Assembly (NCBI GenBank): GCA_002269645.1
Contig: NIVC01004481.1
Coordinates: 1 to 44,554, forward strand
Origin: Macrostomum lignano
Lineage: Eukaryota
DNA length: 44,554 nucleotides
Direction of reading: 5' to 3'
Shown here: positions 38,405 through 41,400 of the stretch, in pieces
Numbering within the stretch: position 1 is the stretch's first letter
How the letters are laid out: each line of letters starts with the position of its first letter
Position numbers and translations under genes: made by a program
Notes under the pieces: model-generated
Told to the model about the DNA's origin: nothing
The model's input: only the letters and a program-made list of their open reading frames with translations
Databases searched by the model: none

Positions 38405-41400
38405 ATGGCTTCTGAGCGACAGACCGAGGAAGGCCTTCAGGCTGATGAGAAGAAGCAAGACAAACAACAAGAAAATTCACCGCCCCAGAAAGTCACTCAG
38501 TTCGTGTCCGACTTCTGCGGCTACACCTCCGCTCACGGACTCGGCCGGTTCTCTTCCCAGTCGGGCACCTTGGGTCGCGTCATCTGGCTTACCTTCCTGC
38601 TGGGCACCTACGGCGGCTTCACGTACCACCTGTACAGCCTGTTCGACCGGTTCATGGGCGCACCGGTGCTCACGTCCATTGCGACCTCGCTTCCGTTCGA
38701 GTTTCCGGATGTGTACCTGTGCCCGCACAGAGCGATCACCATGAGCACCATGGTGGAGAGGATCTCGCCTACGTATTTAACTAACTCCCAAGTTGACTGC
38801 TGCTGGTCGAACAGCTTCGCCTTTGACATGGAGAAAAAAGTAAGTGGCGCCCACCCGTCTGAGTTGCGACTGACTCCGGAGATTCTGGCGCTGTTTCACG
38901 TGATTTCCGGGACGGAGCAATCGCTGATGAAAGAATACCGACAGGCTGTTAACCGTGAGCTCTGCGACTACTAAGTGCTTTTTCTTGGAGAACCCTAGAA
39001 TGCTCAGAACTTAGAAGCATTGCTTAGTTCTTGTCAGAGCATCAAAGTTACTAAGACTTTTTATCACGAGCTTGTGACAGTAAACATTTAGCTAGGCTAT
39101 TTAAAGGTTGAAGCTACAGTAAAATGTTCTGCATTTAAATTTGCTCTGCACACGCCCAACCTAAGCTGATTGGTCTTATCAATTCAGGAGTCGTACCCGA
39201 ACGCCGTTGCAGACAGCAATTCCGAGTGTCGCATCACCCAAGCTGGTGAGGAGTACAATGGCAGCCTCTCAGTTGTGCCCATCTACCAACGCATTGGAGA
39301 AGAAAAAGTCGTATCGAACGTCAGCTTCTTCAGCACCTTGCCGTACCTGAGCTACCAGAACTGCACCGAGTGGAACCGAGCTGCGCGACTGTTGCTAAAC
39401 ACCACGCTGTCCCATCAAGCCGGCCAGATTCTGGCGTTAAACCTGTCAGAGAGTGACAACAAGTGCAGAGCTCCCCCGGGTGTCCCTCTCACTCAGTGGT
39501 GGAATGGGTCGTATCGTAAGTTAAACCGCAATTCAAACTTTAACAGGAATTTGGGGATATTTATACATTTCTGGCTTGAGCAAGAAGCTGATCGTGAAAC
39601 GTGAAACGTGAGTAGCGAGTCTGCTCAAATTCGGTTCCTAGAGCCAGTTTTATGGCACAGAATGTGCCTCGCAGGTCACCTTGCGTGAGTGGGTGGTTTG
39701 GTAAGAGTCGGTGGTGAATCTTTAGCCAGTTCAATATATTCCATTTTACGGAAATTCTTCCCTGGTATCCGGTATCTCACTAGTGCATTTTGGGTTGAAA
39801 ACCGGCTCTAAAAAGGGGTCGTTGCACCGATTCTAAAGAATCGACTTTAGAACCATGAGACAAATTCGGTCTGCCCCCACGAGGGCCGATCCAAAGACAC
39901 AGAGTCTGAGCACTGAGCATTGAGAATGCTCAGAAAGAGAAGGCACTATTCCTCTGAAAAATGTATTGCCTGCTTGATTGAACTTAAAAATATGATCGGC
40001 ATTTGTTCTCTAGGTCCGCTGCAAATCGAGCTTGGCTGCTATTTCAAAGCGGTAGCTTCGGCACCCTATAAATGTGCCATAAATGACTTTGCTGGCATGA
40101 CGAGCCAGATGTGCAGAGAATGCTGCTACGGAAAGGGTTATGTCTACATGGGCCTGACCAGCCCAGATTGCTACTGCATCACAAAGAGCGACGGTGAAAA
40201 CATGAAGATGTTTGGCAGCGCCTCTAACTGTGACGCCACGTGCAACGGAGAAAACCGAGTCTGCGGCAGCAACGATCTCCTGTCGCTGAGTCTCTTGCAG
40301 ATCGATTTCGACGGTAGGTACCTTAATTATTTTTTTAATACACTATAACAAGTTATCTAGTAAATAATAATAACTGCCAGAAACTTTTGCTTTCCATATT
40401 CTAATTCTCGGCTGCAATCAAATCTATCGAGTACGAGTGACCCTCAATTTTCCACTCGGGGCTTTCAAGGGTGGACACAGAGACTCTGTGGCTTCGCCTA
40501 GTCAAAGTAGTCTATGGCCCAAACCAAAGTGGCTAGAAGGCGCGATCAGTTTTCCAACTGAGGCAAAAAATTTTCCACACCCTGTAAGCAGAAGACTCCG
40601 TGGAAAAGGCAGCGGAATTTTGTCTATGGCCAAGCTATACTGAGACCATTCAGTGCCGAAGCTTTTCTGAGAGGCTTTGATCAGGTCTAAACTTAAGTGC
40701 GAGCTTGTGGTCTCGTAAGACCACAAACAGCCCTTTTCTTTTGACGACTTGATTGACTGACGCGTTGTCTGCTCTCTGACGGCGGAGATTTAACCTCCAC
40801 AAGGCCAAAATACTAAAATTAGCGATGAAACGCGGCAGCTCATCATTCATTCTCACGAACGGGGAGACACAATACACTGTAGGTCTTGCCAAGATATCCT
40901 GGTTTAAATACGAGTGGAAAACTGATTGCACCTTCTAGCCATTTTGGCTTGGGCCATAGACTACTTTGACTAGGCGAAGCCACAGAGTCTCTGTGTCCAC
41001 CAAGCCCAGAGTGGAAAATTGACTGCAAAAAGCGATACTTGTTTGCAGGCTAGGAATATCAGCTTCAAAAATCAAAGTTTGTCAACTCTCAGTCCCTCCA
41101 GCACCTTGCTAAACCCGACTGAGATCAGGCCCGGCAAGCAATTGATCATTAAGATAAAATCGCGCCTAATTAATCCACTTTTGATAATAGTAAGCACATA
41201 ATTCCAGACTCGAGGCCGATGCGCATTCCGCTTGGCAACAGCCTCACAAATTCGATGCAGGGTCCTTACTGCTTCTACTTTGACAGCACCCAGCTCAGCG
41301 CCTACTACTGCGGCGTTCCGTTCTGTGGTAACGCAGTTTTATTTTTATCTACATGCATATTCGAGCTACATCTAGTATGGTCATTCAGGAAACTTGAAAT

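Follow-up and report, generated by a model that had tools for sequence, protein, structure and literature searches.

The 300-nt exon at positions 40014-40313 of the window, the whole 44,554-nt stretch of Macrostomum lignano DNA analysed here, encodes a WSC domain that would sit inside a kringle. Our preferred reading, to which we give a probability of about 0.78, is that this exon is included constitutively in the genes of a DEG/ENaC channel family specific to the M. lignano lineage, whose finger would consist of kringle 1, with the WSC domain nested in it, and kringle 2. The features of the gene are listed below by their position and strand in the window, with the main evidence in brackets for most of them.

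38405-38954, plus strand: exon 1, with start codon, HG motif, TM1 and the start of the ectodomain (ASC match)
39213-39515, plus strand: kringle 1 N-terminal half (K1N), with Cys1-3 and NKCRAPPG, 303 nt, phase 1-1 (hhalign, paralogue exon)
40014-40313, plus strand: WSC exon, with the whole WSC domain, short linkers and 10 cysteines, 300 nt, phase 1-1 (Pfam WSC, paralogue exons)
40444-41022, no strand: foldback, MITE-like element inside the intron that separates the WSC exon from K1C, non-coding for the gene (inverted repeats)
41208-41327, plus strand: kringle 1 C-terminal half (K1C), with Cys4 (GPYCFY), Cys5 and Cys6 (GVPFC), 120 nt, phase 1-1 (hhalign)
42334-42498, plus strand: kringle 2 exon a, with Cys1 and Cys2, phase 1-1 (hhalign, PDB profile search)
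43369-43489, plus strand: kringle 2 exon b, with Cys3 (NYCRSV) and the beginning of the long loop, phase 1-2 (phase-2 loop intron kept in paralogues)
43592-43698, plus strand: kringle 2 exon c, with the remainder of the loop and Cys4-6, phase 2-1
43912-44272, plus strand: next ASC ectodomain exon (CxFxxxxC...GLCHRF), with an apparent 1-nt deletion near 44108-44117 (tblastn)

Judged by its sequence, the WSC exon lies in a gene for a DEG/ENaC (amiloride-sensitive channel) subunit of M. lignano. The predicted protein matches Pfam ASC (PF00858) with 61.3 bits (cutoff 23.6), and it shows the HG motif (SAHGLG, residue 44; 38534-38536) and a hydrophobic span at residues 59-80 as TM1 (about 38579-38644). 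Both are encoded by exon 1, which is covered from 38411 to 38953 by tblastn with paralogues and ends in a phase-1 donor (C/gtgagc) on which the paralogues agree. The gene runs past the end of the window (44554), ahead of the exons for TM2 and the pore; this region is present in the full-length paralogues P0035, P0112 and P0116, and the channel motif CxFxxxxC...GxC is found in the host family. An alignment to FaNaC (7yvb) puts the module of kringle 1, with its WSC domain, and kringle 2 within the extracellular finger region of the channel, where ~480 module-bearing residues fall between chain residues ~155 and ~207. Present annotation labels the family proteins just “WSC domain-containing” or “amiloride-sensitive channel” and overlooks the kringles, and we found no description of a kringle or WSC domain in DEG/ENaC members or Macrostomum channels in the literature. 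An Rfam scan of 38000-44554 gave no match. The channel host, the family-wide layout and the frameshift reported below are absent from a preliminary description of this DNA.

By profile comparison, the two exons that flank the WSC exon are complementary halves of one kringle, with the WSC domain placed within the Cys3-Cys4 loop. The cysteine codons of K1N are at 39227 (Cys1), 39362 (Cys2) and 39464 (Cys3), those of K1C at 41270 (Cys4), 41309 (Cys5) and 41324 (Cys6). In hhalign searches against a reference of 80 genuine kringles, K1N alone aligned to kringle columns 1-61 (94.2%, E 1e-7), K1C alone to columns 62-83 (96.6%, E 7e-10) and the two halves joined to columns 1-83 (98.3% probability, E 2.6e-14), while reversed and column-shuffled controls reached 0.6% at most. 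The six cysteines of the kringles are in register with those of genuine kringles. A PDB profile search with K1C retrieved the C-terminal halves of plasminogen, tPA and apo(a) kringles; a single-sequence PDB search with kringle 1 gave marginal kringle matches. The preliminary description had placed Cys1-3 upstream and Cys4-6 downstream of the WSC exon and had the WSC domain nested in the loop from NKCRAP to GPYCFY instead of following the kringle in tandem, as it does in Kremen; both statements agree with the codon positions and with the alignment of the two halves. The upstream exon does carry Cys1-3, but the start previously implied for it has to be corrected to 39213, in phase 1. Further exons that would complete two separate kringles were not found: tblastn of both flanking introns revealed no more family-like coding sequence. 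The foldback element in the downstream intron has inverted repeats at 40470-40556/40915-41001 (87 nt, 95%) and 40444-40464/41002-41022.

Pfam Kringle (PF00051) gave no match to kringle 1 with the WSC domain removed (gathering threshold 34.3 bits), and the family members receive no Pfam kringle annotation. With the WSC domain included, the Cys3-Cys4 loop of kringle 1 comprises 137 residues. Plasminogen-type kringles have a short Cys3-Cys4 loop of about 11 residues with the acidic lysine-binding centre NPD...D; the corresponding CRAPPGVPL of kringle 1 and CRSVSHVQE of kringle 2 are without its acidic pair. Structure prediction of the nested segment, carried out on paralogue P0035, gave a moderate model (pLDDT 66.5, pTM 0.60 in AlphaFold) that is poor over the first 50 residues, including Cys1. 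Foldseek found a weak match of this model to a kringle (4duu, E 0.3), and the stretch between Cys2 and Cys3 was predicted to form a helix, an uncommon feature among kringles. The WSC-less kringle 1 of paralogue P0099 was modelled with a pLDDT of 50.0, and Foldseek returned no meaningful match. MAFFT alignments, in which short kringle fragments were misplaced and kringle 2 was laid over K1N, were left out of the modelling.

Kringle 2 is recovered by the same kinds of profile search: hhalign against the 80 true kringles gave 98.3% (E 1.1e-14, template columns 8-83), and 38 of the 42 matches in a PDB profile search were kringles. Its Pfam Kringle score of 18.1 bits is under the threshold of 34.3. 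Compared with each other by hhalign, kringles 1 and 2 matched weakly with two to three sequences per side and at 70% with more paralogues. It had been suggested that the same loop is extended and split by an intron in kringle 2, and we indeed find a Cys3-Cys4 loop of 31 residues, with inserts visible in the hhalign alignment, and a phase-2 intron (43489/43592) within it that is kept in paralogues P0012, P0030 and P0035. It is plausible that in kringle 2, too, the Cys3-Cys4 loop tolerates insertions. However, this intron is in phase 2 and not in phase 1 as in the kringle 1 loop, so that their phases do not mark the two as homologous.

The WSC exon itself is bordered by canonical AG/GT splice sites, with ttctctag immediately upstream and gtaggt immediately downstream. 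Pfam WSC (PF01822) recognizes the exon product alone with a marginal pass of 28.3 bits (gathering threshold 27.8, E 2e-6) and scores 22.6 bits inside the full gene model; scores are higher in the paralogues, at 39.1 bits for P0035 and 41.1 bits for P0030. In the AlphaFold model of the P0035 segment, this region was matched by Foldseek to yeast Wsc1 (7pz2, E 2e-6, TM 0.78-0.79, 28% identity) and to the WSC domain of Kremen1 (5fws, E 9e-5), so that the WSC fold is confirmed by prediction on the paralogue. Together with the splice borders and the Pfam match, this bears out the earlier assignment of 40014-40313 as a 300-nt WSC exon of phase 1-1. For an artefact, whether an error of the assembly or gene model or a chance ORF in an intron of a two-kringle gene, speak the marginal Pfam score of this copy and the fact that the protein encoded in the window is missing from protein collections except for a 74-residue fragment. 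However, the same exon occurs in the same order and phase on independent contigs of GCA_002269645.1, the splice sites are canonical and the paralogue model confirms the WSC fold. We consider an artefact extremely improbable and already close to refuted.

The nested layout is confirmed, at the level of sequence, as real and common to the relatives of the gene. At least six paralogue groups (P0001, P0006, P0007, P0012/P0116, P0030/P0112 and P0035) share the order K1N-WSC-K1C-kringle 2, although they are only 33-37% identical to the protein encoded in the window. In the two paralogues with genomic loci mapped across this site, the WSC domain is likewise carried by a single phase 1-1 exon, of 300 nt (L001 4592-4891) and 312 nt (L002 6630-6941); the K1N exon of P0035 has 303 nt and phase 1-1 as in the window, and the paralogue K1C exon has 123 nt and phase 1-1. 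Cysteine counts are 3/10/3 for K1N, WSC and K1C in five of the seven WSC-bearing paralogues. One divergent group, P0099, has a continuous kringle 1 without a WSC domain in its protein models, with a junction at the place of the WSC insertion. This group may represent a pre- or post-insertion state of the same kringle. All family relatives are from M. lignano. A profile of K1C and kringle 2 matched 102 proteins at E<=1e-3 among 1.84 billion. This profile also reaches true kringle proteins, with E down to 1e-20, and the multi-stretch matches that we checked were true kringle proteins with Pfam scores of 185-1368 bits.

The WSC exon had been described as a skippable cassette, from which the gene would yield both WSC-bearing and plain-kringle forms. 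The arithmetic of this proposal is right: with 300 nt and phase 1-1, omission of the exon preserves the frame, and the predicted skip product has a Cys3-Cys4 loop of 37 residues, the length found in the natural WSC-less P0099 group. Gene models of that group diverge exactly at this junction (P0099 versus P0123), which also speaks for alternative splicing. However, exon symmetry is uninformative on skipping, because K1N (303 nt), the WSC exon (300 nt), K1C (120 nt) and the whole of kringle 2 (393 nt) are each flanked by phase-1 introns. Moreover, all seven models of WSC-bearing paralogues that span the site, from two annotation sources, include the WSC domain, and its ten cysteines are kept at 33-37% overall identity. 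We therefore regard a cassette as quite improbable and constitutive inclusion of the WSC exon as the better reading.

This copy of the gene carries an apparent defect downstream of the module. All paralogue tblastn matches to exon 43912-44272 change frame at 44108-44123 (FVLA[x]MNNVQLAN versus FIANMSSTQLAG), and the apparent loss of 1 nt brings a TGA into frame at 44118-44120. With 361 nt, the exon differs in length (mod 3 = 1) from its paralogue counterparts of 365 and 359 nt (mod 3 = 2). The frameshift may reflect a pseudogene or an assembly error, and this copy may accordingly be inactive. For a pseudogene speak the deletion relative to all paralogues and the lack of a full-length protein of this copy in databases; the splice sites and cysteines upstream, however, are all intact, and single-base indels are a frequent error in long-read assemblies. 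A pseudogene thus seems possible, if somewhat doubtful, and is compatible with an architecture that is real in the family.

How the nesting arose may be read from the intron phases. Domains bounded by phase-1 introns are the usual mark of exon shuffling, and we infer that the symmetrical phase 1-1 WSC exon entered a pre-existing phase-1 intron within the kringle loop, as in the classical shuffling of class 1-1 modules. Alternatively, the nesting could have resulted not from insertion but from exon loss in a Kremen-like kringle-WSC-kringle row, leaving a chimeric kringle around the WSC domain. In that scenario, the C-half exon of the first kringle and the N-half exons of the next would be gone. 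Such deletions would stay in frame, because all exons concerned are of phase 1, and Kremen provides a well-established example of a kringle with a WSC domain after it (PMC5014086). On the other hand, there is no tandem kringle-WSC-kringle relative among the 102 profile matches, and in the P0099 group kringle 1 runs through uninterrupted, its junction in the same place and no WSC domain present. The sequences of this group fit an insertion into, or a clean loss from, one kringle. We consider exon loss unlikely and continue with the insertion of a WSC exon into a pre-existing kringle.

In canonical kringles, disulfides connect cysteines 1-6, 2-4 and 3-5. With the same pairing, all three disulfides of kringle 1 (Cys189-Cys424, Cys234-Cys406 and Cys268-Cys419) would span the WSC insert. 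Since this pairing would bridge the insert, the WSC domain would stand out from a closed kringle as an independent knob. Kringle 2 would add an enlarged version of the same Cys3-Cys4 loop to the finger module. The finger of DEG/ENaC channels is where ligands and modulators act, and by analogy the module, in place of the canonical lysine-binding loop, probably serves as a sensor that binds a ligand, glycan or matrix. A more far-reaching picture, which we put forward as speculative and on the whole unlikely, is that of a private Macrostomum class of DEG/ENaC channels with a Kremen-like kringle/WSC finger built by three-level nesting. Through this finger the channel would be tethered to a glycan, a matrix component or a secreted ligand and gated as a mechano- or chemosensor, the coupling being tuned by WSC inclusion or by WSC-less paralogues.

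The gene is a clear-cut natural example in which one symmetrical exon lodges an entire domain in a small disulfide-locked module, with an exon-level record kept across paralogues. It is useful for studies of the way exon shuffling gives rise to nested architectures and of the amount of insertion that a kringle loop tolerates. It also belongs to a previously undescribed DEG/ENaC subfamily with kringle and WSC domains in the finger, which suggests that these channels receive extracellular input of a new kind.

Among DEG/ENaC channels, FaNaC, ENaC and the degenerins share with the flatworm family the Pfam ASC domain, the HG motif, TM1, the CxFxxxxC...GxC motif and TM2, the last as judged from full-length paralogues. 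The extra module is located where these channels vary most, and the inserted region comprises ~480 residues in the flatworm family compared with ~50 in FaNaC.

Kremen1/2, Wnt co-receptors with the order kringle-WSC-CUB, are the known case of an animal protein with both a kringle and a WSC domain. In Kremen1, these domains are tightly packed against each other and jointly form the interface for the ligand Dkk (PMC5014086). However, the domains of Kremen are arranged in tandem, whereas the WSC domain of the flatworm gene lies inside the Cys3-Cys4 loop of the kringle, and Kremen is a type I receptor with a CUB domain, whereas the flatworm host is a two-TM DEG/ENaC channel; Pfam gave no match to a CUB domain in the flatworm family proteins. 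Structurally, the insert is matched best by the yeast mechanosensor Wsc1, a cell-wall sensor of fungi whose only WSC domain is N-terminal and which the flatworm domain resembles in its predicted fold.

Domain insertions are frequent overall, being reported for about 20% of multidomain proteins (PMC13114784). In such nested architectures one domain likewise interrupts another, the insert here being a single phase 1-1 exon in a phase-1 intron. A difference is that the host here is a small disulfide-locked module of ~80 residues, in which all three disulfides would span the insert, and the nesting has three levels, with a WSC domain in a kringle in an ASC ectodomain.

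The WSC domain is encoded within a predicted DEG/ENaC-type gene on the plus strand, which starts with an ATG at position 38405 and extends to the end of this eukaryotic sequence. Our gene model comprises eight exons, with AG/GT borders at every junction:

38405-38954, plus strand, exon 1
39213-39515, plus strand, exon 2, N-terminal half of kringle 1 (K1N)
40014-40313, plus strand, exon 3, WSC domain
41208-41327, plus strand, exon 4, C-terminal half of kringle 1 (K1C)
42334-42498, plus strand, exon 5, kringle 2 (K2)
43369-43489, plus strand, exon 6, K2
43592-43698, plus strand, exon 7, K2
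43912-44272, plus strand, exon 8, ASC ectodomain

In this model the WSC exon is 300 nt long and is both entered and left in phase 1, as the preliminary description had stated. UniProt entry A0A1I8GL18 (74 residues) corresponds to exon 6 and the sequence from 43866 onward, with a single residue differing, which places the window in M. lignano or a species very near to it. The entry is one of three models of this locus (with A0A1I8G7B6 and A0A1I8JIG6; 74-75 residues) named “Transposase,” which fuse 43398-43489 to intron sequence from 43866, before exon 8, and omit the C-terminal half of K2. The locus thus seems to have been mis-annotated.

The N-terminal exon matches ASC (DEG/ENaC) with 61 bits, including the HG motif and TM1, and the ASC ectodomain picks up again past K2 (CSFGGQKC...GLCHRF). 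All relatives derive from Macrostomum lignano and share 33-37% identity with the window protein. The order K1N-WSC-K1C-K2 is found in the paralogues P0001, P0006, P0007, P0012/P0116, P0030/P0112, and P0035. Full-length paralogues of 1033-1091 residues contain TM2, indicating complete channel subunits. By alignment, the module-bearing region (∼480 residues) is placed between residues ∼155 and ∼207 of the FaNaC chain 7yvb, which we take to be the finger region. In the databases, family proteins are labeled either “WSC domain-containing” or “amiloride-sensitive sodium channel.” Several WormBase-derived paralogue models, P0001-P0003 among them, end in “...AFKVSG,” as donor read-through would give; the donor equivalent to 44272 (AAG/gtgaat) would be read through to KVN and a stop (window 44270-44281). 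These models appear to be intron read-through truncations rather than short proteins.

The product of the WSC exon alone scores 28.3 bits against Pfam WSC (gathering score 27.8), which is marginal by itself, and 22.6 bits within the whole window protein, while the equivalent paralogue segments reach 39-41 bits. With paralogue P0035 standing in for the window's own sequence, the AlphaFold model of the segment matched the sensor domain of yeast Wsc1 (7pz2; E 2e-6, TM 0.79) and the WSC domain of Kremen1 (5fws; E 9e-5). A degenerate nested WSC with both kringle halves still intact is present in P0012/P0116 (residues ∼288-375, locus L003); it shows no Pfam WSC match, scores 43 bits with the family WSC HMM, and has a loop with 11 cysteines.

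The preliminary description had proposed that the flanking exons are halves of one kringle. Pfam Kringle does not match K1 with the WSC removed and gives little support for K2 (18 bits). In PDB profile searches, kringles account for 38 of the 42 matches to K2 (prothrombin, E 5e-4) and for five of the six to K1 minus WSC, every one of these on the C-terminal half. A HMMER profile of K1C+K2 yielded 102 matches at E<=1e-3 among 1.84 billion representative proteins; those checked beyond the family are true multi-kringle proteins (Pfam Kringle 185-1368 bits). The decisive comparison was made by hhalign, using an alignment of eight paralogues with the insert excised against 80 true kringles. K1 without the insert aligned over all 83 template columns (98.3% probability, E 2.6e-14), with its six cysteines in register. 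K1N alone covered columns 1-61 (94.2%, E 1e-7) and K1C alone columns 62-83 (96.6%, E 7e-10), whereas reversed, column-shuffled, and WSC-profile controls stayed at or below 0.6%. The halves are thus complementary and meet exactly between “CR.P..” and “GPYC.” Additional exons completing two separate kringles around the WSC domain, which by the preliminary description would have spoken against nesting, were not found: a tblastn search with seven relatives detected no further family-like coding sequence in either WSC-flanking intron or in the rest of the window. Taken together, these results confirm the observation of a WSC domain within a kringle and support its interpretation as nesting.

The window and four of the six other WSC-bearing paralogues have cysteine counts of 3/10/3 for K1N, insert, and K1C. 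Canonical kringle bonds connect cysteines 1-6, 2-4, and 3-5 (C32-C114, C55-C95, and C84-C109 in Kremen1; PMC5014086). Since each bond links the N-terminal with the C-terminal half, we infer that the insert has to be enclosed by a closed kringle, with the WSC domain, which has an even cysteine count, folding independently. In the Kremen1 WSC domain, the first and last strands are adjacent in the sheet (PMC5014086); such a topology suits a loop-inserted domain. The AlphaFold model of the nested P0035 segment is of moderate quality (pLDDT 66.5, pTM 0.60, first 50 residues poor), and that of a WSC-less relative was too poor for use.

We mapped junctions in three paralogue loci (P0035, P0030, and P0012) from GCA_002269645.1. 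In P0035, K1N (303 nt), WSC (300 nt), and K1C (123 nt) are all phase 1-1; in P0030, K1N (297 nt) and WSC (312 nt) are phase 1-1 and K1C is entered in phase 1; in P0012, the mapped K1N entry is phase 1. A phase-2 intron within the K2 loop and a phase-1 intron after K2 are kept in all three. The nested layout and its introns must therefore have existed before these paralogues diverged. It is well established that 1-1 symmetry is the normal result when extracellular modules spread by exon shuffling (Patthy). Because phase-1 introns bound each of K1N, WSC, K1C, and K2 as a whole, the symmetry of the WSC exon is the usual trace of exon shuffling and no specific sign of alternative splicing. On the available evidence, the skippable cassette exon proposed earlier is unlikely. 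The only, weak hint toward it comes from P0099 (A0A1I8G9S9) and its relatives P0123 and P0124, ASC proteins with K1 and K2 that lack the WSC domain; the family WSC HMM matches every family member except these three. Their K1 Cys3-Cys4 loop has 37 residues, exactly the length this loop of the window protein would have upon exon skipping, and their gene models conflict precisely at this junction. This state fits a pre-insertion form, secondary loss, or gene models that leave out an exon.

Compared with all paralogues, exon 43912-44272 lacks one base, and it contains an in-frame TGA at 44118-44120. Paralogue matches switch frame at 44108-44123, with an apparent 1-nt deletion within 44108-44120. 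Either a long-read assembly indel error accounts for this, or the copy is a pseudogene or null allele.

A foldback MITE-like element (40444-41022; terminal inverted repeats of ∼110 nt, 95% complementary) makes up most of the extra length of the WSC-K1C intron. Long tandem-repeat arrays are numerous in the window (268-3280, 4920-5700, 18600-19950, 21840-22740, 37560-37920, and 41560-42240); among them is a ∼650-nt (CTAA)n-like array within the K1C-K2 intron. Immediately upstream of the channel gene lies a BEL/Pao-type LTR retrotransposon (∼29880-36500, plus strand; Pfam matches to DUF1759 (gag-like), Peptidase_A17, RVT_1, rve, and DUF5641), probably decayed since its coding sequence is split among several ORFs. 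Two ORFs at 28321-29026 (plus strand) are exons of a fibrinogen-related gene, scoring 113 and 41 bits against the fibrinogen C-terminal globular domain. An exon at 15931-16260 (minus strand) matches Pfam Globin (33.8 bits), its raw ORF continuing straight into a tandem repeat array. A block at ∼5700-10300 has 59-69% GC, compared to ∼40-48% elsewhere, and long low-complexity ORFs on both strands; its 442-residue ORF (7969-9294) has no Pfam match.

The case illustrates exon shuffling neatly and brings to light an unusual channel subfamily, but it is limited to predicted proteins from a single species, and the copy in the window may be defective. According to PMC13114784, domain insertion in general is common. 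Our literature search retrieved no report of any domain nested in a kringle, or of a DEG/ENaC channel that contains kringle or WSC domains. We therefore class the case as known domains and a known mechanism in a previously undescribed architecture. The known protein combining kringle and WSC domains is Kremen, which also carries a CUB domain that the window gene lacks; its domains are arranged in tandem, whereas those of the window gene are nested.
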